Origin: Mytilus trossulus
Lineage: Eukaryota
NCBI RefSeq assembly: GCF_036588685.1
Contig: NC_086376.1
Location: 71,403,630-71,467,629 of the forward strand
Length of the DNA: 64,000 nt
Direction: 5' to 3'
Below, piece by piece: positions 11,419 to 43,100 of this stretch; within the stretch, counting starts at the first letter, position 1; every line of letters starts with the position of its first letter. A program made the position numbers and the translations under genes. The notes under the pieces were generated by a model, which saw only the letters and a program-made list of their open reading frames with translations, made no database searches and was not told where the DNA came from.

Positions 11419-13101
11419 TTAACATCCTGATATAGTCACTTTATAAATTTTGGCGTCTTTGGTTGTATGGCCTTCTTCTGCACCACATGCTATGAAGAGT
11501 TGTCCTGTCTGTGTGAACGAAAGGGAAACTGGATGTAGTATTCCTATGTCTTTAGTGTTGTACCATGACACAAGGTTCCCTGTACTATCCAGGATGTGTA
11601 AGGAGTTCGTATTCATTTCAGACACCAAAACATTGTCACTTTTTGTTGTTACTATTCTATTTGGTTTAAATGATTTGAGTTTGTTGATTTTTTGATGGCC
11701 ATTATATGAATTAATTATTTCGCCTCCTGGTTCAAACACTACCACTCTTCCTTCCTGACCTGGTTCACGGTCCACCACATGGATATTGCCAGTACTGGTA
11801 CTGGTAATACTCCTAGGGTATGTAAGTATAGGTTGATTATGTTGATCATGTTCATACACAGTCTCATGGTCTCCCTTTTCGTTCATTACAAACACAGCTT
11901 TTCTTCCTAGTTTATCATTAACACCTCCTACTATAACTTTATTATTACTGGTTATGTGGATTATTGTGGAAGCTAAAGGTTTCACATTATATACAGTGTC
12001 TGAAAGTTCACCGGTGGAAATGTTAAGTTGTTGAAGTCTTGATTTCCCAACAGACAGAAGGAGGTCATTTGACGGTGATATTGCCATTCCATAAACTGCC
12101 AAGTTCAAGGTCGAAACTACATCAAGTTTTTTCTCCTTAGGTTCTGCTTTTACAACGTTATTGTCTAAAGCTGAATTAATATAAATAGAATCTTCATATG
12201 AAATGATATCCGATACAGCAGAAAGTTCTGTAAGATACTCTTCAATAATATGAAATGAAACTAATAATTTCTCTGGCTTTTTTAAAACTCCAACATTTGT
12301 TTGAGTTATTTCCCCTGAGTAAAAAATAGGTGTAGAATTGTATGTAGAATGTGTTTTCGGTGCTTTGACTTCCATTGAATTTTCAATTCTCCTTATGTCA
12401 GTAAAAAACTTAGTAATGTCTCTGGTTTTAAGAAAGTCACCAATTTCATTGTATTTTAAGTAAACTTCTCTCATGGATTTCGAAACTGTATGTATTTCAG
12501 TATCAATTGACTTCAAAATAGTCTTTATATTTTCATCATTTTCATTTTTTAGTTTTTGGATATATTTGTCAATAGTCCTTTTCAACAAATCGCCATGATT
12601 CATAATACTCTGGATTACTTTGCTGTGCTTCACATTTTCAGCATTCTTATGCTGTTCCAAAAGTTTTTTTCTGGTGATGACCTTCTCTTTTTCCATTTTA
12701 ATTTGACTTTGTCCTTGTTTCAGCCTATCTATTTTAGTATTGTATGCTTCCCTAATCTCAATAAGTTGATTTACATGATTTATATGAACTTCAGACACAC
12801 AAATAGGACAAACAAGACTGTCACATCTCTTGCAAAAAAGACGGCAAGATTTTTCAGCATGTTTTGAACATTGAATATTTTTTAAATCAATTTCTTCATT
12901 GTTAAGATCAACATCTTCGATATTTATGACCTTATGATCCTGTGCATTTCTTATTCTACAATGTCTTTCATCTTTACATTTATCACACATAAATAGTCCA
13001 CAATCTGTGCATTTCCACCTGATGTTTTTCTCAGTATCACATAGATGACAATTTGTAGGTACTTGTAGTTGACTTTTATTAATGGATTGAGAATAAGCCA
13101 T
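11419..13101 (-). CDS. RING-less TRIM-like protein: B-box1, B-box2, coiled coil, NHL-like beta-propeller (560 aa, intronless CDS)
   Basis: Long uninterrupted ORF. B-box1 is CHLC...CTDC...CDKC...H...H. B-box2 is CSKH...FCKRCDSLVCPIC...H. A heptad-rich helix follows, then repeats such as YPRSITSTSTGNIHVVD, PNRIVTTKSDNVLVSE and PVSLSFTQTGQLFIAC. The first ATG (MAYSQ) is at 13101; the ORF track starts at an upstream GTG. Confidence 0.9.
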   Translation of the reverse strand: MAYSQSINKSQLQVPTNCHLCDTEKNIRWKCTDCGLFMCDKCKDERHCRIRNAQDHKVINIEDVDLNNEEIDLKNIQCSKHAEKSCRLFCKRCDSLVCPICVSEVHINHVNQLIEIREAYNTKIDRLKQGQSQIKMEKEKVITRKKLLEQHKNAENVKHSKVIQSIMNHGDLLKRTIDKYIQKLKNENDENIKTILKSIDTEIHTVSKSMREVYLKYNEIGDFLKTRDITKFFTDIRRIENSMEVKAPKTHSTYNSTPIFYSGEITQTNVGVLKKPEKLLVSFHIIEEYLTELSAVSDIISYEDSIYINSALDNNVVKAEPKEKKLDVVSTLNLAVYGMAISPSNDLLLSVGKSRLQQLNISTGELSDTVYNVKPLASTIIHITSNNKVIVGGVNDKLGRKAVFVMNEKGDHETVYEHDQHNQPILTYPRSITSTSTGNIHVVDREPGQEGRVVVFEPGGEIINSYNGHQKINKLKSFKPNRIVTTKSDNVLVSEMNTNSLHILDSTGNLVSWYNTKDIGILHPVSLSFTQTGQLFIACGAEEGHTTKDAKIYKVTISGC

Positions 13102-15032
13102 TATATTGCACACATGATTCTCACAGCTATCAGTATTACATTGCTTATATATATTAAAAAGAACAAATAATATTTAAACTTCCAATGTATTATGTGTAGA
13201 TAACAAACCAATTTGAAATCTTCTTTTAATCAAATTAGGTTTGCCTAATACCGGTAAATGCAGTACATAATGATTTAACCAATTGATAATTTTTGTAGTT
13301 AATTAACTGTACAGAAAGATAATATAACATTACAGTTTAGATATGTTTTAAAGGAATTCACACTAGTGATACAACATTTATTAAAACTTTATTATTTAAC
13401 AAAGTTGTGTTGAGTATAATGTTTTGACCCGTCCCCACCTGTCCGTCTGTCCATCAGTTCTGTTCTTGTCATCACAACACCTCTGAAACCACACAACAGA
13501 ATTTCATGATAATTAGAACATATTATGTGTGTATATTTAAATATCATCAGAAAATTTTTATTAAATTTCATTCTAGGAGTTATATAGCGGTATGAACATA
13601 GAATTTTGACACCAAGATACTAGTGTATCAGTTTGTCATTGCATACCCTGAAACGATGCAACAGAATAACATAAACTTTGTAGAAATTGAAGACATATTA
13701 ATCATGTTAATTGTAGATGTGCATATCGATGGGAAATTGTAATTCAAATTGTTTTTCATTTACATTAGGTAAAATATCTAAGGATATAAAATGCCTGTAT
13801 TAAACATATATTTAACATGTAGCTATATACATATAGACTACATGTACCACAGACGTAAAACATCCCTTGGTTCTCATCTGTACTAAGTTCCTTTTGGTCA
13901 GTAAAACATCCATCAAAATTTGTGTATTTTATGGAGTTTAGAATAATGTTTACATTCACGTGAGCAAAATTTGCCTATGTATTTATTATGATCTTACCTC
14001 CTATACATTTCTAGGAATATGATTGGTTAAAAACATCCACATGGAGACTGTGTATATTCATATTAGGATAGTAGGGAGGCGAGGCTTATTTCATACACGG
14101 TTAGCAGTGGTGTTACGTCCCTTTATATTCCATACAAGGTAATAAGGAGGTGGGGCTTATTTCATACATGGTTAGTAGTGGTGTTAAGTCCCTTTATGAA
14201 AACAAAACGGTACTAGTACTGATAAAAAATCTTAAAGGTTTCAACTGACTAAGAAATTGATGATCAAGTGAATTTATAAAACACATTTAAACCTAACAAG
14301 TTGTTATTGTTTTTGTGGGATCAATGGAAGTAGTTTCTTAATGCTATTACTTTAAACAGTATTGAAAACTTGCTCACTTTGACAGATCACTGGTCTAAAT
14401 TTTACATGTTAAGATAGTCTGTAAGATAAATTCGTTACATAGTATGCTAGTTCACTCGTTTAATCCATGCAATGTTCGGTCACATGTTGTCTTATTTTTT
14501 ATATTCAAATAAGGCGATTAGTTATACTATAATTAATCATGATAATAAGACCTTTCAATACACCAAAGACATTACATTTTTGGGCCAAATAGGTGCTAAA
14601 TCTAAGTTAAGATACATATCATCACTTACATTTAAATATGCAGTAGCAAATTTTAACTTTATCTGTATAACTTATTGAATGTAGATTTGTGCTGTCTAAG
14701 TAATATATATAATTGATTTGATATTATTTACGTTGTCATTTTAAGCTGTTTAGATATTTTTTAAAGATAAATCAGAATTATTGAACCTTGTGTACTATAT
14801 TTACATTTGTGGCTGTTAAATTAAATAGTAAAGTTATTGTATAGACTGATCCATTTGACAATTTAGCCATAGAATTTCCTATTACCATGATAACTGACCA
14901 TATTTAAAGTAAGTATCATTGGCATGATGTTTGCAGAAATCTCTAAAGTACTTAGAAATATATTGTTGTGTTTCTGTATAAAAAAATATAAAGGTACATC
15001 AGTTATGTGAATATTTTTACTTAGGTAATTTA

Positions 15033-15465: not shown

Positions 15466-17815
15466 GTAATTTAGAAAAAAAAACCATTAAAACTCATAAA
15501 CAGTAAAACACTAACGTAAGTCATTTAATCAATTTAACTATATGAGGTAGGTTATTGAAGATTATAAACCATTGATTTCTTAAACAACATGTTAAACTGA
15601 TAAACATTATCAAGATTAGACTAGTACATTAAGATCCATGGCCATGCTTGAATTGGTCAATAAATTGATAGTCAAACAGAGGTCAAAGTATTTTTCTGCC
15701 ATAATATTTATGCAAGAGGAAGAGACTCTTAATGAAAAATGTCAGGCTTTCTGGACCATGGGAAATTGTTCTAATAAAGTGTCTACTATTGTATATCTGT
15801 GTTTGTGCTTTTTTTTTGGTTGTTTTGTTTCTTATTAAAAAAAAGATAAAAATGGATCAGACACAATAAAAATGTACTAGTACAACAAATTTTAGATGAA
15901 AAAAATATATATTAATATCAGCATATGTAATCCTTTTGATTTCTGTATAAATTTACATATGTACTTATCAATCATGCATAAATCACATACATTGTTATAT
16001 AATCTTAACAAATGAAACACAAATCATGCATAATTCACATACATTATTTAATGATCTTTACAAAGAAACACATATGTTTGTCTTCACTTATTAAACACAA
16101 ATTGCACAAATTTGGCATGCATATTATGGCTTTTAGCTATATATAGGCTAAGGGGCTTATATGTATATAGACGTAGAGCATTAGTTCTCAGTATAAAACT
16201 TTTAATATAAAGATAGATCTATTCTTGGAATAATCTTTACTGCTGGGTCACACAAATTTTTGACATGAGCTAGGGTTGATATATCATTTCAGGAAGTTTT
16301 TCCTTATTTTACATTTTATCTTTGAGATGACAAAAGGCAAAGTTTAGATTTTTGTAAAAGCCTAAACCATTTGTAAACTGAAAGTAAGGAACTTTTAAAA
16401 AGGAATATCTTTCTACTTTAAATGTCGTAATTGTATATAATTATTGTAGTATTTTGTTAGGAAGGTAATTTTACTGACAAGCAAAGGGATATTTTAAAAA
16501 GAAATTGAATTTAAGGGATATAAAGCTGAAACTAATCAAATTGTATGTAGTAATATATTAATATTAAAAGTGACATAAGTTATAGATTTTTTAATTATAT
16601 TAATTCTGTTTACTGGTATGTATTTAAGGAAGGTACGTAACATCTGGTCATTTTTTTATAAATTGACGTAAAACTAATAAATTAATAAATTCTAGGGAAT
16701 CACTTACAGAAAATAAATGGTAAGACACATGCATTTTATATTATATTTTCTATATTTTTTTTTTACCTTTTATTTTCTCAAAAAGGATATCTAACACTAG
16801 GTTGTCTGAAGCCCAGAACCTGATTTGAAATTTTATGTCATATCCTGAATGATCTGGTTGGATTAAGGATTTTGTATCAATGCAATATTTTTTTTTAATT
16901 TATAGACCACTGTTTTTAGAATTTGGACAATTTAAAGCTTGAAATTTTGTGAAGACATGTACATCTGTCTAATGCTAAAGACTATATATTGATCTCGATT
17001 TATCTTTTTAATTTATTCATCAATTGATAAAAAATCATACTAATTTGTCAGTCATTACTATTTTTAATTTCATCTACATGCTATAGGACATTTATTAACA
17101 ATACATTTTTAAATTTGTATATTATACTCAGATAAATTGCAATTTGTTAGTCCAAAATATTGTCATGTTTGATGATTGTCACCTGACTGTCCAGCTATGG
17201 TGAGACAAGTTATCACTTCTGTTGACTTTTCTCCTGGTATGCAACAGACATGTCATACTTTGTTAATCCCAACTCTGTTAAAATTATATGACAGAAGTCA
17301 ACCAAGCCTACAAAGATTCTTCTACAGGATACAAAGTTATTTAGTTGTTATTTTTAATGGAACAATTTCAGTCTTCTTAAAAACTGTACCCTTTGATTTG
17401 TAAATTATATTTGTACTGCATTTTAACTATACTGGTCCATTACTTCAGCTTCTTTTAATAGTGTTGCAAATTATTATTGTAACAAATCAGGGTTACCAAA
17501 ACTAAGGTTTCACTTTATAGGTTTGGACTTTTTTTGCATTATATTTTATGGGTAAAAGGACTAGTAAATGTTACTTATGAATTAAGCAACAATGTGTTCA
17601 TGTATCTTCCAACAACACATCATGAATATATAATGTTTTTCTGAATATATTTGCAGCAATCTGATTAGATATTGAAAATGATATAAGGACAAATGCATGT
17701 GTACAATTAACTCACTAAAATGATTGATTCTTTATTTATATTATTTTCTGTTTAAGGATGACACCATAGTAACAGACATAATGGGATAGTAAAATATAAA
17801 TAATAAAAGATCACC

Positions 17816-20800
17816 ATGGCAACCATCCCTGGATCTGCTGGATTGCCGTTGCTAGGCGACAGATCATATGACTTCTATAAAGACCCAGTGAAGTTTATGG
17901 AGAAAAACATCAGTTACTACAAGAACAGAAATTTTATTGGAAGATTTCTGAATAAATCAACAGTGTTTGTTGGATGCAACAAAACTTTGAAATGTTTACT
18001 GACAGGTTTGTTGTTTTAGTAATAATTATCTGTGTAAAACTCTTACTTTTAGAGATTTTATAATAATTAATCACTAACTGCCAGATTTTGTAGTGTTGCC
18101 TCTCATAGTGTGGCCATTCATCACTAACTGCCAGATTTGTAGATTTGTCCCCCATGTTCCATCACTTGCCAGATTTGTAGAGTTTTCTCCCATACATCAC
18201 TAACACCAAATTTGTAGAGTTGTCTCCCATACATCAATAACTGCCATATTTGTAGAGTTGTCTCCCATATTCCAATACCTACCAAATGTTAAGAGTTGTC
18301 TTCCATACATCACTTACTGCCAGGCTTATAGATTTGTATCCCACATTTCATTTATTGCCATAATATAGAGTGACTCAGAGGCACATTTCCCCCCGTTTAA
18401 TTAAGGACAGGTATACTAATAGTGTTTTTTTTTTATATATTTTCAGAAGAGGCAGATAAACTTGATCTGGGATATAAAATGTTCATGGGAGACATCTATG
18501 GTGACAACATTTTATTTACTGATGGTGAGAAGATTATTTTTCAGAATATAATCTAAAGGTTTTACATAACAACATCTTTAATAGTGTATAGTTTAGAACA
18601 GTTTTGGTAATTGATAAGTTTCATGAAGGGATATGGGGCTACCTTCTGTTGTTCTGACAGAAACCCATTAGCCACCACTATTTATCATTATGCCTTCCAT
18701 TATTGATCTGGTTTTCAGTACATTATAGCACATAACAAAGGCTTATGATTATAATCTAGTTGTGATCTTTCTTGTCAAACTGACATATATAGTATAAACA
18801 AATTTCAAACAGGATCATGTAAATTAGTTATCTTGAATGTTGGGGCAGTTCTTTAACTGTTTTCTTTATTACAATTTAACCTTTTTAGTGTGAACATCTA
18901 TCTGTGAGCACAAACCAACTTTCAGTTACTCACAAAATCAAATGTAAAGAAAAACAATGAATGCAAGAAACTAAAACTTGTCACAGTACAAACTGATTTT
19001 AGACATTGAGTGGTATCAAGTGCTATTGGAGAGTAGGCTAATACAGAATGGCATTGGCATCTGTAGTGTATCATGTGCCCAGTGGTCAAATCTGGGAATG
19101 CATTAAATTCATGTTAAGTTTCTTCTTTGAATTTCAGGTTTGGACATGGTATCCTTACGAGAGTCTTTAATCCTACTGTTTACCCCTGAAGCTGTTTCTA
19201 CTTATCAAGAGACAATCAAACATGTGGTGACAAACTTTATACACAAAATAGATACGGAGTAAGTACAGATAATCAAACATGTGGTGACAAACTTTATACA
19301 CAAAATAGATACAGAGTAAGTACAGATAATCAAACATGTGGTGACAAACTTTATACACAAAATAGATACAGAGTAAGTATAGATAATCAAACATGTGGTG
19401 ACAAACTTTATACACAAAATAGATACGGAGTAAGTATAGATAATCAAACATGTGGTGACAAACTTTATACACAAAATAGATACGGAGTAAGTATAGACAA
19501 TCAAACATGTGGTGACAAACTTTATACACAAAATAGATACGGAGTAAGTATAGATAATCAAACATGTGGTGACAAACTTTATACACAAAATAGATACGGA
19601 GTAAGTATAGACAATCAAACATGTGGTGACAAACTTTATACACAAAATAGATACAGAGTAAGTACAGATAATCAAACATGTGGTGACAAACTTTATACAC
19701 AAAATAGATACAGAGTAAGTACAGATAATCAAACATGTGGTGACAAACTTTATACACAAAATAGATACAGAGTAAGTACAGATAATCAAACATGTGGTGA
19801 CAAACTTTATACACAAAATAGATACGGAGTAAGTACAGATAATCACTACAGATGCAGGTCTTTATAGTTTCTTTTCCACAAATTAAATTGCTAGAATACA
19901 AGTGTTTTTTTCAACTTACCTTAAATTTCTCAAGTTTAGGAAGGTTGAAAATTGACTCAAACTTCTGAATTCCTGATTAATGTAATATTTGACCTTCATT
20001 AGAGTTAAAATTTTAATCTCAAGAATTTAATCCAAAAAACTCTGCAAAGAACTGAGGTTAATAAACTCTGCAAGACCTTCCTGAAGGCTTGTTGATATCA
20101 AAATACTTAGAGGTGGTATGATTGCAAATGATACATCTTTCAACCATGGTCCAAATGATTTGAATATAATCAACTTAAATTCACTGTAGTGTCTTTAACA
20201 ATGAGCAAAATCCATAACTCATAACTAGTCAGCTATAGAAGATCTTTTTTTTTCAAATAAGATCCCTCATTATTCATCTTTGTTTTGTAGGGAGATAGGA
20301 AATTAAATGAAATTTGTATTTGGTATGAAAAAATACTGACCAGTATGTACTCCCCTCTGTAAAAGAGAACATTCAAATAAGTGATGAAAATCTTCACCAT
20401 CTGAAATAAATGATAATACACTCACAGTTTAAATTGTCTCCCCTGTTAGGCCAAAAAAAATATATGTCTGTTTACGGTTACTTGACTGACACTATTTTCA
20501 TCGCTGACCCTAAGCCATTTTATTTCCGTGGTAAAGTGAAAAATAAACTAAACTCGTCTCTAAAGTGAAGATAGTGTTGCCTGATACATCCCAATGTTCA
20601 TAATCGTGAATATGATAGCTGTTTTAAGGAAATTCGCTACTCGTGTGATGTAATAAACATTTTTCCGCCATATTTTTCCAACCAATATCAAAAGGAAATA
20701 ATCCAATCATTAAAATTACAGGTAAAGTCTGCCCATGATCAACAGATGACAAGACGAAACCGCACACTCAAAATCATGTCATAAAAAATAAATATGATAA

Positions 20801-23800
20801 AATGGAAATACCGACCTACCTACCCTATTTTTTAAAGCATGTAACCTTAAACAGACATATATTTTTTTTTGGCCTTATAGATCCCTTGTTGATATTTATA
20901 TGGAATACTTGCAGGAATCCAGTATGTTTGTATCAAACATTAAAGAGGATGTGTATAGAAGTGTGTCTTAGTTTGTTCCTTGGTATTGACTTTGATACAA
21001 TGACAGAATTAACAGAAACTATTGTCTCCTTGACAACCACTCATTGGCATGGTGAGTTTAATTAGTTGGGGAATTTTGAAAGTAAAAATCCTTATTTCAG
21101 AATGTATTTATTATGCTATACTAATATAAGCCCTGTTGGAGGTTTTTTTCTGAAAATAAAGTACATAGTACAGACTGGAATAGAATTGAGAATGGAAATG
21201 GGGAATATGTGAAAGAAACAACAACTTGACCAAAGAGCAGAAAACAGCCTAAGGCCGCCAATAGGTCTTCAAAACAGTGAGGAAATCCTGCACCTGGAGG
21301 CATACTTCAGCTGGACCCTAAACAAAAATGTACTAGTTCAGTGATAATGGACTTCATACTAAACTCTGAAAAATGTTAATTACCTAAATAACTAACAAGG
21401 CTCCTGACTTAGGATAGGCGCAAAAATGTGGCGGGTTTAAATAGGGTTTGAAATCTCAACCCTTCCTTATACCTCTAGCACAATTTACCTTTAGTAGATA
21501 TATCTTATAAATTTAAGTCATATAAAACTTCAAATTTACATATACAAAACCTGGTATAATTATGCTTTATTTTAATAGGTATAATATCAGTTCCAGTGAA
21601 TCTAAAACTTCCTATTGGTGGAGCCTCTACTTTTAGTAAAGCTTTAGATGCAAAGGTTTGTACTTATATCTATTGGTTTCTTTGATTTGTCTTGTTATGG
21701 CCTTATACAATTATTTAAATCCCCAAAAAAATGATATTTTCTTCTGATTAGTTTTGTGTAGTCTATCCACTGTAATTTGAAAATTCAAGAGTTAACAACT
21801 TTTCCACTAAGTGCTTAAAATTTTAATCCTTGAATCAAAGCTTTGTTTTTTATACACCCCCTTTTACAGGACTTATTATGGTATACTGTTGTTTGTCTGT
21901 CTGTTCATCCTTCATCAACATAATGGACATTAACTCAAAAAGCTTTAACCAATTTGCCTAAAACTTTGATTAATTATTTATATCTATTGAAGTGAGTTCC
22001 CTTTTGGTTTTTTTTATAAATTTTAGATTTTACATTTCCAAGCTATGGGGTTTTATTCATAAAAAAGGGTGATTTTGCAGTTTTTAGACAATATCTCAAA
22101 AATGTTTTCACCAAATCTCATGAAACTGGGTGAATTATTTTATATCTACTGTTGTATTCATAATTTTTTATTTTCATAAATTCTAATGTAACATTGAGAA
22201 GTAATTGTACTTTATTCTTTGAAAATGTGACAGGCATATCATGTGTTCATGGTTGTATAAAGCAGCAATGAATTAAGACATTTGTTACTTTTACAGGCAA
22301 AACTGCTTGATATAATCCAAAACAAAAAAACAAGCACTAGTCGTCATTTTGCAAAGAAGATACAGGAAGTACCCAAGGGAGATAATGGAATATTTGTGAA
22401 CAATCATCTGCTTCTGTTTACCTCTGCCCTTGTACCAAAAGCATTATCTTCATTACTCACATCATTCATAATAGAAGTTGCCAAGCAAAAGGTATATAAA
22501 ACTTATTATTTCTTATGCAGCAAAAATACTGCAATCTGATTGGTTGACTACCCCAGTGTAAATAGCACCCCACCCTGGTTCACCCGGGGATAAATAAAAT
22601 TTTGCCAAGTTTAAAAATAAAATGAAATTTTGCCATAAAAAATTTAAATATAATATAAAATGTTTCCAAAATAAAGAAAAAATTAAGAAAATAAATTATA
22701 AGAAGAAAATGCAAAATGCCAAAAAAAATAAATTTGAAAACTCTAAAGAACACAAAAATTTTCTGAATTTTTCCAAAAATAAAGTAAAAAGTATTTGACA
22801 ATGTGCAGCAGCATGGACATTGAAAAAATATTACGCTGGAAATTTTTCATTACCATTTTTACAATTTTACATCCTGGTTTCAAATGAGTAAAGGAATTGT
22901 TCATAAGAAATAAATTCGTTATCTTGGTGTAATCAGGGGTGTACAGAATTTTACACCGTTGTTGAAAATTCATACACCCTGAGGCGCACCAAGATAACTA
23001 ATAATATCTAGTAACCATATGTTTTATTTACCAAGTTTCATAGAACACCTCTCTTAAAAAAAGGTACACAATTTATAGATTTCTGATGTATAAGCAATGA
23101 AGTATATGCGCAATTAAAGAAAAAAATAGAAAGAAGACATTTTATTATTAGGTATTTTCATTTCTTTCTATACAATGTTCAATGTAAGTCTTCTTAGTAT
23201 GTGTTTTTTTTAATGCAATATCCATACATTTGCACTGCCAGTCCAATGTATATGCAAATAAGGAGATGTGGTATAATTGACAATGAGACCACTCTCCACC
23301 AGAGAGAATATGATGACAGCATACTCACAAACAAAAAACTGTAAATTATAAGTTCATACACAACATACACCAATTATGCAATGAAGGGGAAAAGAAGTAT
23401 TAATTAAAAGATCCTACTGAAAATTGCTTTTATTTCAAACAGGACCTACAAGAAAGCATTCTTACAGACAGAGGTTTAAGAGAGATATATATGTTAGAAG
23501 TCCAGAGAATGTACCCTCCATTCTTTGGTGGTAGGAGAGTTATAAATAAGGTAAGGTGTTTTCCCATTGATTGATTGTTGGTTGCTTTACGCCGCATTAG
23601 CACAAAAAGGCTATATCGCGGCAACAGGTGTTTTCCCAAATTATCAACCTAATTCTTAATTATTTATTTTTTGATCTTACATTTCATCAACCGAAAAATG
23701 TTTTCATTCAATAAAGTATAATTGTATCTTACTCCTTTGAATTCATTTATTTCCGCGGGTACCAATTTTGTGAATTAATGAAATCTTGCATGTTAATGGA

Positions 23801-25570
23801 TATTTAATTCATGGTTTTTATGAAGTCTGCACTTTCCTATTGAAAATTTGTTATTTGTTGAACATTTAATTTCGAGGTTCACCTAAACTGACGAAATCCT
23901 TGAAAATTGATATCCAACAAATAATAATGAATCCACAGTATTGGTTTTTACATTTTTTATTTCCTCACATCTGAATTTGTTTACAACACCAGTTTAATTT
24001 CTAATGTCCAAACAACAGCATTTTTTTTTTTAATTTAAGTTTTCAGTTTATATTGAAAATGAACATAATTTTCCTATATTTATGTAGATGTGTTTTATTT
24101 TTCAGGATGTTGAGGTTAATAAACAGAAGTTTGTGAAGGGTAATGCCATTGTATTTTCTACATATGCCACACACAGAGATCCTGAGGTATTTGATGATCC
24201 TCACCAGTTTCAACCACAACGATGGACAGAAAAGTAATTTTGGCAATTTTTATTAAATCCTTTAGCTAAAAAAAATGTTTTCTCTAATATCAGTAGATCT
24301 TTAGCCTGCTTGCATTTATGTCAATTTCATGGCAATAACTTACCAGCAAACAAATGGGACGAAACTTGACATCATAATATAAGTTTAACCAAAATATGAT
24401 CCAACAAGGTATCAGAATTATAATTTATTTGGTGGCTTTTTTCCTATCTTCATGAGATTCCCATGTGGAACTAAGGGCATGATTACAAGGTCCAAATATT
24501 GTTGAAAGGATAAAACCAAACTCAAGGTTATTATGCAGAGCAAAAGAGGAATCAAGGCTCTATTTTTATGTGTGGGTCGAATGCTGAAAGAATGGTAGAA
24601 ATGAAGATTTTATGTTGTTATCTTTTTATCACATATGTGAAATTAAAAAGAAAATTACTAATTTTAGTCAAAAATAAATTTTTATTTCTTTTCAGAAATA
24701 TGAATGACAAAGACAAATTATTTTGCTTTGGTGCAGGACCTAGATGTTGTGTAGGACAGAAGTTAGTTTGGTGTATAATTGATGTGAGTTTTTACATGTA
24801 AAAAATATAATTAGGAGAATATATTTGTAAATTGTGTATAGATGATATTTATAGGTATTTATAAAGAATAAAGAACAACAGAGCCATTAAGAAATCAATA
24901 ACACATATACAATTATGAAGAAAAAAAATCAAAATATTCTGTGTTATCAAATAGGATTTAACTCTGGTGGATAGTTGTCTCATTGGCAATCATACCACAA
25001 CTTCTTATTCTTTATTATCACTGAATTTGATAACAAATATGGTTGATTAAACCAAAGCCATTCATAGCTGTAAAACACTTTTCAGCCCCATTTATCGGCA
25101 TTATGTTTTCTGGTCTGTGTGTCCTTTGTTCGTCCATTTGTTCATCCATCTGTTCGTTAGTCCGTCTGTCCCGCTTCAAGTTAAAGTTTTTGGTCAAGGA
25201 AGTTTTTGATGAAGTTGAAGTCCTATCAACTTGAAACTTAGTACACATGTTCTTTATGATATGATCTTTCTAATTTTAATGCCAAATTAGAGATTTTATC
25301 CAATTTTCACGGTCCACTGAACATAGAAAATGATAGTGCGGATTGGACATTGGTGTACTGGGACACATTCTTGTTTTTAAAGTACAACATCTAATCGATC
25401 ATCAACTAAATAATATTCTTTCTTTATTGTAGACCATTATTGATGAAATGTTGACCAAATTCAAAGTATCATTAATTGATGAACAAGATCTCACTCATAA
25501 ATGGTTACCAGTTTCCAGACCTAAAAATGAAGTACTGGTACAGTTTACTGAAAAGGATACCAGTCAGTAG
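17816..25570 (+). CDS. Cytochrome P450, CYP26 clan, CYP16/CYP120-like (10 coding exons, 419 aa)
   Basis: Exons 17816-18005, 18447-18524, 19138-19258, 20915-21051, 21579-21655, 22297-22491, 23443-23550, 24106-24233, 24696-24783 and 25433-25570. They total 1260 nt, all introns are GT-AG, and phases are consistent. Motifs: PGSAGLPLLG hinge, K-helix EVQR, meander FQPQRW, heme loop FGAGPRCCVG. The family assignment is from recall and needs a phylogeny. Confidence 0.93.
18060..18365. repeat. Degenerate ~38-40-bp minisatellite in P450 intron 1
   Basis: Repeated CATCACTAACTGCCAGATTTGTAGAGTTGTCTCCCATA-like units, about 7 copies. Confidence 0.8.
19210..19845 (+). repeat. 57-bp x 11 tandem array spanning the P450 exon-3/intron-3 boundary
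   Basis: Unit AGAYAATCAAACATGTGGTGACAAACTTTATACACAAAATAGATACRGAGTAAGTAY. There are 11 full units at 19210-19836 plus a 9-nt partial, with only 3 variable positions. Confidence 0.97.
20449..20874. mobile_element. PIF/Harbinger-type MITE (TTA TSD)
   Basis: TIRs GGCCAAAAAAAATATATGTCTGTTTA.GGTTAC at both ends. TTA at 20446-20448 and 20875-20877. Confidence 0.8.
25080..25377 (+). mobile_element. Short HINE/Helentron-type element (second copy, inverted, at about 32238-32465)
   Basis: GGCATTATGTTTTCTGGTCTG, then a (GTCC/GTTC)-like microsatellite, then ...GTACTGGGACACATTCTTGTTT end. Confidence 0.7.
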
Positions 25571-26591: not shown

Positions 26592-27242
26592 TTTATACCC
26601 CTGCTTTAAAAAAGGGGGGGTATACTGTTTTACCTCTGTCTGTCAGTCCGTCCGTCCGTCAGTCCGTCCGTCAGTCAGTCCGTCCCACAAAACTTTCGTC
26701 ACATTTTTCTCAGGAACTACACATCCACCCTTTCTGTAATTTGGTATCAACATTTATATATGTCAGCCATACTGTGTGATGCGTTTTCAGATTCATCACT
26801 TGACAACTTCCTGTTTACCGAACACTTGTATGATTTTACACATGATAGCCAAGTTGAAAATTTTCGTCACATTTTTCTCAGGAACTACAATACAAGGATT
26901 TCTGAAATTTGGTTTCAGGATTTATATAAGTCAGCTTTACCATGTGATGCGTTTTCAGATTCATCACTCGACAACTTCCTGTTTACCGAACACTTGTATG
27001 ATTTTACACATGATAGCCAGTTGAAAATTTTCGTCACATTTTTCTCAGGAACTACAATACAAGGATTTCTGAAATTTGGTTTCAGGATTTATATAAGTCA
27101 CCTATACCGTGTGATGCGTTTTCAGATTCATCACTCTACAACTTCCTGTTTACCGAACACTTGCATATTTTCACACTATTAATATTATCCACTTGCGGCG
27201 GGGGTATCATCAGTGAGCAGTAGCTTGTAGTTTCACTTGTTA
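26592..27242 (+). mobile_element. HINE/Helentron-type element with (CCGT)n microsatellite and about 3 internal tandem units
   Basis: TTTATACCCC...GGGGGGTATA 5' inverted repeat, GTCCGTCCGTC tract, repeated TTTCGTCACATTTTTCTCAGGAACTAC units, 3' GGGGGTATCATCAGTGAGC...CACTTGTT. Confidence 0.8.
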
Positions 27243-28459: not shown

Positions 28460-28838
28460 TTTTATTCAGTGTAACATGTGTTTATTCAGTGTTACATCTG
28501 ATGATTAAATGTAACATGTTTATTCAGTGTAACATGTGTTTATTCAGTGTAACATGTGTTTATTCAGTGTAACATGTGTTTATTCAGTGTAACATGTGTT
28601 TATTCAGTGTAACATATGTTTATTCAGTGAAACATGTTTATTCAGTGTAACATGTGTTTATTCGGTGTTACATCTGATGATTAAATGTAACATGTTTATT
28701 CAGTGTAACATATGTTTATTCAATGTAACATGTTTATTCAGTGTAACATGTCTTTATTCAGTGTAATGTATGTTTATTAAATGTAACATATGTTTATTCA
28801 GTGTAACATATGTATGTTTATTAAAAATGTAACATGTC
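28460..28838. repeat. ~20-bp minisatellite (TTTATTCAGTGTAACATGTG)n
   Basis: Roughly 18 units of 18-24 bp. The variant block GTTACATCTGATGATTAAATGTAAC occurs twice. Confidence 0.92.
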
Positions 28839-40100: not shown

Positions 40101-43100
40101 ATTTCGAATAAACAAACATAATATGTCAAAAAGCTAAAACTATTTTAAATTTAAAAGAAATAAATACGACTTTTCTAGATATGAACTTACTGCCGGTATT
40201 ATATTAAAAATATTTCGGGAATTTTTCATTTTGGGCATCAGAAGATTATATATAATTCTATTTATAATATGACTAACAATTCTAGAGAAAGAATTTGTGA
40301 AAGCTCAGTCAATGATCAATTTTAATATGTGAGTTATATGGGCTTCTGTTGCATCTGTGTTTTGCATACCATTGTATCATTTGGGGGAGAAAATTGTCAT
40401 TAAATCAAACTATTTCTGATTATCAAAATGAAACATCAGTCCAGATTTTAAATTAAAAAAGAAATGTCTTTTTATTTTTATTCCCAGAAAGTTTTTATGA
40501 CTTCTGTAGACATGTGAAAAACTGTCCTTGCTTTATTATAAGAAACCTTGGGATTGGAATATATTAACTGATTCTTAATCTTGCAAATAAGTGAAGATAC
40601 TTATCTCACAAAAATATCCTTCTTTACATTGTATCACACTTTCTTCACAGGTGATATAAAAGTTAAGGTGGTACCTAACACCTTAACTAAAATTAATTTG
40701 GCTCGTTTAATTTTCTTAAAATTTTGACAAAGTATTTACTTTGACCCTTTGACAAAAATATAAAAAAAAAAAAAAAATTGAACTAACCGTTTAATCAGAA
40801 AAATTACACTGGTTATATAGCAGTTTGACAAACACTTATTTTGATCATTGAGAAGCTTAATATTCCCTTAAGAACACAACGTCATTAAAGCAATCTGCTG
40901 ATTTACAGAGTTATCTCCCTGTAGTGTTAGGTACCACCTAAATAAACAAGAGTGCACACGCTGAAATGTCTAGCCTTCTTTACTAATCATTGATATTATG
41001 TTGATAGACCTAAATATAAAGCTTTACTACAACTGTCACATAAACTCAACATTGATCAATAAACCATGAAAATGAGGTCAAGGTCAGATGAACCATGCCA
41101 GGCAGACATGTACAGCTAACAATTCTTCAAAACAACAAATATAGTTGACTTATTGCTAATAAATTAGGAAAAACAGACCAAAACACAAACACTTAACACT
41201 TAGTAATGGGTCGTGAAAATGAGGTCAAGGTCAAATAAAACCTGCGTAACAGACATATAGATCATAAAATATTTTCATACACCAAATATAGTTGACCTAT
41301 TTGCATAAAGTATTAGAAAAATAGTCCAAAACTCAAAAACTTAACTTTGACCACTGAACAATGAAAATGAGGTCAAGGTCAGATGACACCTGTCAGCTAG
41401 ACATGTACACCTTACAATCATTCCATACGCCAAATATAGCAGACCTATTGCATATAGTATAAGAAAAACAGACCAAAACACAAAAACTTAACTATAACCA
41501 CTGAACCATGAAAATGAGGTCAAGGTCAGATGACACCTGTCAGGTAGACATGTACACCTTACAATCATTCCATACACCAAATATAGTAGACCTATTGCAT
41601 ATAGTATAAGAAAAACAGACCAAAACACAAAAACTTAACTATAACTACTGAACCATGAAAATGAGGTCAAGGTCAGGTGACACCTGCCAGTTGGACATGT
41701 ACACCTTACAGTCCTTCCATACACCGAATATACTAGACCTATTGCTTATAGTATCTGAGATATGGACTTAACCACCAAAACTTAACCTTGTTCACTGATC
41801 CATGAAATGAGGTCGAGGTCAAGTGAAAACTGTCTGACGGGCATGAGGACCTTGCAAGGTACGCACATAACTAATATAGTTATCCAATTACTTATAATAA
41901 GAGAGAATTTAACATTACAAAAAATCTTAACTTTTTTTCAAGTAGTCACTGAACCATGAAAATGAGGTCAAGGACATTGGACATGTGACTGGTGGAAAGT
42001 TCGTAACATGAGGCATTTATATACAAAGTATGAAGCATCCAGGTCTTCTACCTTCTAAAATATAAAGCTTTTAAGAAGTTAGCTAACGCTGCCGCCCCCG
42101 TAGCCGCCGCCCCCGGATCACTATCCCTATGTCGAGCTTTCTGCAACAAAAGTTGCAGGCTCTACAAAAAGTATAGCTTTTCTGCTTATATGGAAAACAA
42201 ATTAAAATTAATAAAAAAGACTTCTATTAGAAAATAACATAGTTAAAACTTATTCTACTTTATTAAAAGTTAAAATGAGTATACAAGTAAATTAATGTAT
42301 TAAAAAAATCATTAATTATAAAAGTTAAAAGTAGAGTGAGAATTAGTTTTCCTCATAAAGCATGCACTGATTGTAAGAAAAGCAAAATATTTAGCAATCT
42401 ACAATGTAACAATGATATAACCTGTAGTCCAGGCCTTCAGTTCCTGATACCGTTTCAGCAAATCTTTCTGAAGATTTTTCACCTGGACAAATAAATTGTT
42501 TAATAAGCATATGTTAAAATCAAAGCTGTGCCGAAGGATAGTCCTCATGACAGCTGTTTCTCTTAACCTTTAACCTTTAACTTTTCTATTTTTTTCAATA
42601 ATATTTGTAAAAGAAAAGACAATATTTCATGACATCAAAACTCAATGTCATCTTGGAAATTTATTGAAAATACTATTAAAAAAATTTTCATCAAGCAAAT
42701 GTTCACCATATTTATACAATATATTCATATCAATAAGAAGATTTCCTTTTGATCAGAAATACGATTGACATAAAGGTGATAGTGAAAAGGTAAATATCTG
42801 GAAGGGACTGCAAAAACAGTGATTATATATCTAAGGCAGTGACATGCAAAGCATGTGGATACAAATATATGTAAGCTGTGTTGTTAAATATAATTAATAT
42901 TTTTTGGTTGCATTTATTAATATATACAAAAAAAAAAGAAAAAAGAACTCAATGTAACTATAGTCTATTACAATGTTTTTAATTATTTTAAACCATGCTA
43001 AAGAGGGGTAAAAAGGGAGGAAAGGTGAAATTTCAACACAAAGCAGCAGTATCAATCTTTCTACAAATCTATCTGAAGGGGGAGGAAAAGGTTGGCCACT

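Follow-up and report, generated by a model that had tools for sequence, protein, structure and literature searches.

The window, that is, the whole 64,000-nucleotide stretch of the Mytilus trossulus genome analyzed here, contains a predicted cytochrome P450 gene on the forward strand (17816-25570), the third exon of which ends in a 57-bp minisatellite (19210-19845, forward strand) that continues into the following intron. The gene model, built from RNA contig joints, tblastn alignments, exon phases and matches to the PF00067 profile, comprises 10 coding exons with a total length of 1260 nt including the stop codon. Exons 1 to 5 lie at 17816-18005, 18447-18524, 19138-19258, 20915-21051 and 21579-21655, and exons 6 to 10 at 22297-22491, 23443-23550, 24106-24233, 24696-24783 and 25433-25570, all on the forward strand. 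The borders of exons 1-7 were taken from GT..AG joints in RNA contigs from three sequencing runs; the remaining borders were read from the genomic sequence, with phases that close.

The exons were searched singly, and a database homolog (P0001) was used for full-length comparisons. Exon 8 matches PF00067 with an E value of 2.5e-11, exon 9 matches it weakly (E 0.016), and the heme-binding motif FxxGxRxCxG is present in exon 9 as FCFGAGPRCCVG. P0001, a protein of 426 aa, was retrieved with the exon-1 query from the protein representatives and is transcript-derived because its entire frame sits in a single 1766-nt Logan contig. In tblastn, P0001 aligns to all 10 of the 10 exons, with 58-88% identity, and the alignment is gapless across the exon 3/4 junction (P0001 FIQNLETQ/KPVCLYQ vs gene FIHKIDTE/NPVCLYQ, the slash marking the junction). 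The best solved relative of P0001 is CYP120A1 (2ve3; E 2e-28, residues 5-412), a soluble cyanobacterial enzyme. Judging by these similarities, the host gene is a cytochrome P450 of the CYP26/CYP120-like kind. It has no close paralog in its own genome, where the other matches show at most 36% identity.

An N-terminal membrane anchor is missing from the predicted P450. The AGx(D/E)T pattern is absent from the I-helix stretch, HLLLFTSALVPKALSSLLTSF, and this stretch is kept in P0001 as well as in P0013, P0028, P0036 and P0039. Apart from the 57-bp array, the introns of the gene contain other repeats: a degenerate 38/76/113-bp tandem array with 76-79% matches lies in intron 1 (18114-18371), and intron 4 includes a very abundant dispersed repeat (21083-21480), over which the contig depth ranges from 1e3 to 1e5 in four of the four runs, RNA and DNA alike. 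Upstream of the P450 gene, on the reverse strand, a single open frame of 584 aa (11422-13173) yields a match to the B-box zinc finger profile PF00643 (E 1.2e-6) along with weak NHL/WD40 matches and looks like an intronless TRIM-NHL-like gene.

Anatomy of the array and its eleven donors

Tandem Repeats Finder reports the array at 19210-19845 as 11.2 copies of a 57-bp unit with 98% matches, no indels and a score of 1181; written in register, it consists of 11 full units plus 9 nt. Each unit is composed of the last 49 nt of exon 3 (19210-19258 in the first unit) and the first 8 nt of the intron (GTAAGTAY), such that unit 1 is the authentic exon end with its donor and units 2-11 are intronic copies. 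The units vary at three positions only, namely, position 4 (C/T), position 47 (G/A) and position 57 (C/T). The first-pass annotation had described the same unit and its near-identity from copy to copy; Tandem Repeats Finder, the unit listing and the RNA contig joints bear out the composition, and the 98% matches with three variable positions agree with the near-identity. For each pair among positions 4, 47 and 57, all four allele combinations are present, a pattern indicative of exchange or conversion among the units. Position 47 lies in a CpG, where repeated mutation could also have occurred, and the high identity of the units can reflect either youth or homogenization.

A 751-nt query including the array has a single match in the 1.3-Gb genome, and the array is therefore a local expansion rather than a dispersed satellite. 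With no second copy of the array and no close paralog of the gene, there is accordingly no sister locus that would display the state before the expansion. A scan of metagenome contigs with a 34-nt unit-junction pattern gave no match. No inverted repeats were found within 19100-19900, and the idea of a hairpin that would hide particular donors was dropped for this reason.

Exon 3 (19138-19258, forward strand) is 121 nt long, enters in phase 1 and leaves in phase 2, as supported by RNA contig joints, the tblastn alignment of P0001 and the phases of the neighboring exons. It ends at 19258 with ...ATA GAT ACG GA, and the intron opens with GTAAGTAC. The authentic 5' splice site, GGA/GTAAGTAC at 19259-19266, is seen in a 214-nt contig of the RNA run X19 and is the first of eleven donors that follow one another at 19259 + 57n and read GGA/GTAAGTAY or AGA/GTAAGTAY. 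The other ten are pseudo-sites at 19316 + 57n, the last one starting at 19829 (19316-19836 altogether, forward strand); five of them (19373-19601) read GTAAGTAT. Donors that read GTAAGTAT could form one base pair more with the 5' end of U1 than the authentic site could. Between positions -45 and +8, the eleven donors hardly differ from one another.

With the first donor, intron 3 (19259-20914, forward strand) is 1656 nt long and includes units 2-11; the X19 contig joint skips 1656 nt with GT..AG ends. Exon 4 (20915-21051, forward strand) follows, its first G completing the codon GA/G, and its borders are given by the joints 19258->20915 and 21050->21578 and by tblastn. Read through the first donor, the exon frame continues as ...HKIDTE, a stop codon, VQIIKHVVTNFIHKIDTE and another stop codon. 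Thus, translation from 19140 onward meets an in-frame TAA at 19260-19262 (forward strand) that recurs every 57 nt. The exon phases close with donor 1 only, and the use of any other donor keeps the TAA in frame and ends the protein. Whichever downstream donor is taken, 53 nt or more separate the TAA at 19260-19262 from the exon 3/4 junction, and six more junctions come after that one. Here too, the first-pass annotation, which had placed eleven donors at 19259, 19316 and so on to 19829, had attributed a protein product to the first of them only and had put an in-frame TAA well upstream of the later junctions for all others, proved accurate on each count, as judged by the donor listing, the closing phases and the translation.

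Two further ways in which the array might contribute to the transcript were considered and rejected. A ladder of in-frame proteins extended by extra units is precluded by the recurrence of the TAA in each unit. A mini-intron that starts at a donor and ends at an AG of the following unit would have no pyrimidine tract and is not represented by any contig.

Donor choice in RNA contigs

The sequencing data include six runs of RNA or guessed RNA (X19-X24); among the DNA runs, X1 is the strong holder, labeled organism A, and the weaker DNA holders come under other labels. Contigs of X19, X20 and X21 (RNA) and of X2 (DNA) were mapped on positions 17700-23650, and all of them are assembled contigs.

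The only unambiguous RNA contig comes from X19, the organism label of which is that of X1. A 214-nt contig of this run covers 19137-19258 and continues with 79 nt of exon 4; because it includes 72 nt of unique exon-3 sequence before the array, it is anchored outside the repeat, and the RNA contig joints 18523->19137 and 19258->20915 are both GT..AG. This contig is an unambiguous case of first-donor use with one unit in the mRNA, in an animal that may carry an array of a different length, or none. A second, allelic X19 contig has AAA for GGA at 19256-19258, which replaces Glu by Lys in the codon that spans the junction and leaves the splice point unchanged.

The mapping also placed a joint of X20 at donor 2 (19315->20915) and a joint of X21 at donor 8 (19657->20915). 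In these contigs, the exon-3 side is 21 nt and 47 nt long, respectively, and lies entirely within the unit. Both joints were rejected as evidence of downstream-donor use: what decided their placement was an A at unit position 47, and an A there equals a synonymous exonic change from ACG to ACA.

Contig depth over the array carries additional information. The depth in the array bins is 13.0 in X19 and 2.64 in X21, and, by arithmetic, these values are exactly the contribution of the exon 3-exon 4 junction contigs; the X19 and X21 RNA assemblies therefore contain no further array sequence. In X20, the depth within 19093-19490 reaches 28.4 and 51.7, beyond what the listed contigs contribute, with 0-0.8 in the adjoining unique intron. 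This excess would correspond to collapsed array contigs derived from trace unspliced RNA or DNA, or to transcripts that keep extra units. Among the listed contigs of X19, X20 and X21, there is no downstream-donor junction and no retained unit before exon 4, although contigs can miss rare forms and those cleared by NMD. As an alternative to regulation by the array, the first-pass annotation had proposed strict selection of the first among eleven equal donors; the 19258->20915 contig of X19, the array depth in X19 and X21 and the precedent of human F7 all fit this proposal.

Precedents, origin and alternative explanations

The P450 array belongs to a known class of junction-spanning minisatellites, represented by the repeat in intron 7 of human F7 (F7 IVS7) and by the amphioxus 'mirages'. 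It is a head-to-tail array in the minisatellite range, its first unit includes the genuine end of an exon together with the donor, the splice site is reiterated in the intron, and the authentic, outermost site yields normal mRNA, as is evident from the X19 contig, in which unique exon-3 sequence, one unit and exon 4 follow one another.

In the F7 gene, the first monomer of a 37-bp VNTR spans the border of exon 7, and four to eight identical pseudo-sites follow the authentic donor (PMC1557585, Borensztajn et al. 2006). Only the most upstream donor is used, and each pseudo-site becomes functional once the preceding ones are inactivated; strengthened pseudo-sites compete only when they match the consensus perfectly, and the use of most pseudo-sites would result in a premature stop (PMC1557585). 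The P450 array shares with F7 the border-spanning first unit, the identical intronic pseudo-donors and the presence of the most upstream donor in normal mRNA. The two differ in dimensions and donor strength: the F7 monomers (5-9, each of 37 bp) include no more than 4 nt of exon and a weak donor (UGG/gugggu), whereas in the P450 array, which counts 11 units, 49 nt of each 57-bp unit are exonic and the donor, GTAAGT, is strong. Furthermore, the F7 donors were assayed in 50 minigenes, whereas the splicing of the P450 array is seen in RNA contigs; the host of the array is a mollusc, not a mammal. The number of repeats in F7 reportedly affects the mRNA level.

Other human genes, namely, IFI6 (6-16), CBS, LMNB2 and PDGFA, contain 10-26 reiterated exon/intron junctions in units of 31-100 bp (PMC1557585). 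In IFI6, with 25 pseudo-sites, and in intron 13 of CBS, with 15-20 repeats, splicing makes constitutive use of the first two pseudo-sites; in LMNB2 (10-15 repeats of 100 bp) and PDGFA (16-18 repeats of 81 bp), only the authentic donor is used (PMC1557585). The P450 mRNA in X19 shares with those of LMNB2 and PDGFA the use of the authentic donor; IFI6 and CBS employ their first two pseudo-sites in addition. Among invertebrates, amphioxus has its mirages: in Adh3, globin and other genes, exon-intron boundaries have been duplicated in the manner of a minisatellite (PMC3087553, Ebner et al. 2010), examples being the globin genes BflGb6 and BflGb9 and the Adh3 case of Canestro et al. 2002 (via PMC3087553). 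Mirages are unstable in length, recur in the genome and leave normal splicing undisturbed (PMC3087553). The P450 array, too, repeats an exon-intron boundary in tandem and belongs to an invertebrate gene; the amphioxus units range from 10 to 160 bp and involve either boundary, and it is in amphioxus that differences in length between haplotypes have been shown. Among the papers searched, no description of junction arrays in molluscs was found.

Our preferred explanation, which we hold to be quite probable, is that splicing takes the first donor, that the ten copies are excised as part of the intron, and that the array arose by a duplication between two 9-nt words and is neutral or nearly so. 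The exonic word, AGACAATCA (19210-19218, forward strand), marks the start of the array; the intronic word, AGATAATCA (19837-19845, forward strand), marks its end and is followed by unique intron sequence starting with CTACAGATGCAGG. The two arms, both read from the sequence, are alike in 8 of 9 positions. Before the expansion, the intron presumably started as GTAAGTAC-AGATAATCA-CTACAG..., with the AGATAATCA word 9 nt into the intron and the two words exactly 57 nt apart. Near-identical words at such spacing are a classic substrate for duplication by slippage or unequal exchange. Through either process, acting between AGACAATCA and AGATAATCA, a 57-bp piece across the exon 3/intron 3 border would have been duplicated, and ordinary minisatellite turnover would have brought the duplicate to 11 units. 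Unit 1 would have stayed the working exon end and donor throughout, with units 2-11 spliced out as part of intron 3. The most upstream donor might be taken either because it closes the 121-nt exon, under exon definition, or as a result of 5'->3' scanning of the kind described for F7. Classic in vitro work, in which the donor nearest to the acceptor is favored once all donors are occupied, counts against an upstream-donor rule. Under an upstream-donor rule, the ten spare donors would see little or no use, and the array would be neutral or near-neutral for the gene.

The principal rival to this explanation, put forward in the first-pass annotation, is a decoy-donor rheostat: a share of the transcripts would be spliced from donors 2-11, keep the TAA and be degraded by NMD, such that the length of the array would set the amount of productive P450 mRNA. 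We regard this as unlikely. The sequence is well suited to it, with eleven donors near-identical from -45 to +8, five of them endowed with an extra potential U1 pair, and with a TAA at least 53 nt ahead of the exon 3/4 junction and of six further junctions; the X20 depth in the array bins beyond the listed contigs would also be compatible with it. However, none of the listed contigs of the three RNA runs crosses the border between two units and continues into exon 4, and the single-unit junction contigs fully explain the array depth in X19 and X21. The human genes pull in both directions: IFI6 and CBS do use their first two pseudo-sites (PMC1557585), but F7 pseudo-sites strengthened to a consensus value of 91 still did not compete (PMC1557585). 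The title of a paper on the CBS VNTR, cited in PMC1557585, links that repeat to reduced enzyme activity, and thus, at the level of a title, the rheostat idea has a precedent. The resemblance to NMD-coupled unproductive splicing, as in poison exons and RUST, holds for the rheostat reading only, inasmuch as a splice choice that brings in a stop lowers the output; in the known cases of poison exons and RUST, the stop isoform is observed and is usually conserved and regulated, whereas none is present among the P450 contigs listed. Moreover, leaky use of downstream donors would be a by-product rather than evidence for a selected regulator. Altogether, a measurable leak to the downstream donors has a small chance of being real, and a selected function has a smaller one. 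A broader version, in which the downstream donors are measurably used in carriers of the array, length variation among mussels tunes the P450 mRNA via NMD, and mussel genomes may form junction arrays unusually often, appears slightly more doubtful.

An artefact of the assembly, whereby a junction present in a single or a few copies was assembled into an array, or into an array of the wrong length, is very improbable. Tandem repeats are a familiar source of assembly errors, and one amphioxus globin array was mis-assembled in the draft genome (PMC3087553). Nevertheless, the irregular pattern of the three variants, the clean 57-nt register and the unique flanks are as in an array spanned by reads, and the window lies within a 96-Mb contig of a 541-contig assembly. 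In X2, a DNA run under another organism label, the array bins have depths of 75.5, 32.5 and 86.6 vs 1-10 in the adjoining unique bins, which weakly suggests a multi-copy array in that DNA as well, such depth not being a copy number. Least credible of all is a role of the ten intronic GTAAGT sites as a landing pad for U1 snRNP, bound without splicing, which might, for instance, suppress premature polyadenylation in intron 3 or slow the release from chromatin. U1 has roles beyond splicing, and ten strong U1 sites within 570 nt are available, but these sites are a by-product of the copying of the junction. We conclude that the feature is most likely near-neutral repeat DNA, with the first donor in use and the other ten removed with the intron.

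The P450 array thus represents one more, rather small, case of a repeat class for which human genes have provided examples since the 1990s and amphioxus since 2002. In practical terms, eleven equal donors can mislead gene predictors to a truncated or extended exon 3, and the correct model is the one that uses the first donor. Natural alleles that differ in the number of identical donors would provide a cheap test of the F7 rule, by which the most upstream site wins, in an invertebrate.

Other tandem repeats are located in the same window and elsewhere in the genome. Downstream of the P450 gene, there are a 167-bp array of 2.9 copies (26689-27176) and a 20/58-bp array of 18 copies (28461-28813). 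A 147/295-bp satellite occupies positions 41037-41830, and its 147-bp unit also occurs 55 Mb away on the same contig (L014 9450-9832); given this recurrence, the satellite is dispersed and probably transposon-borne. An array of a 79-bp unit, with at least 25 copies in the examined part, ends at C4:15912976 in the same genome.
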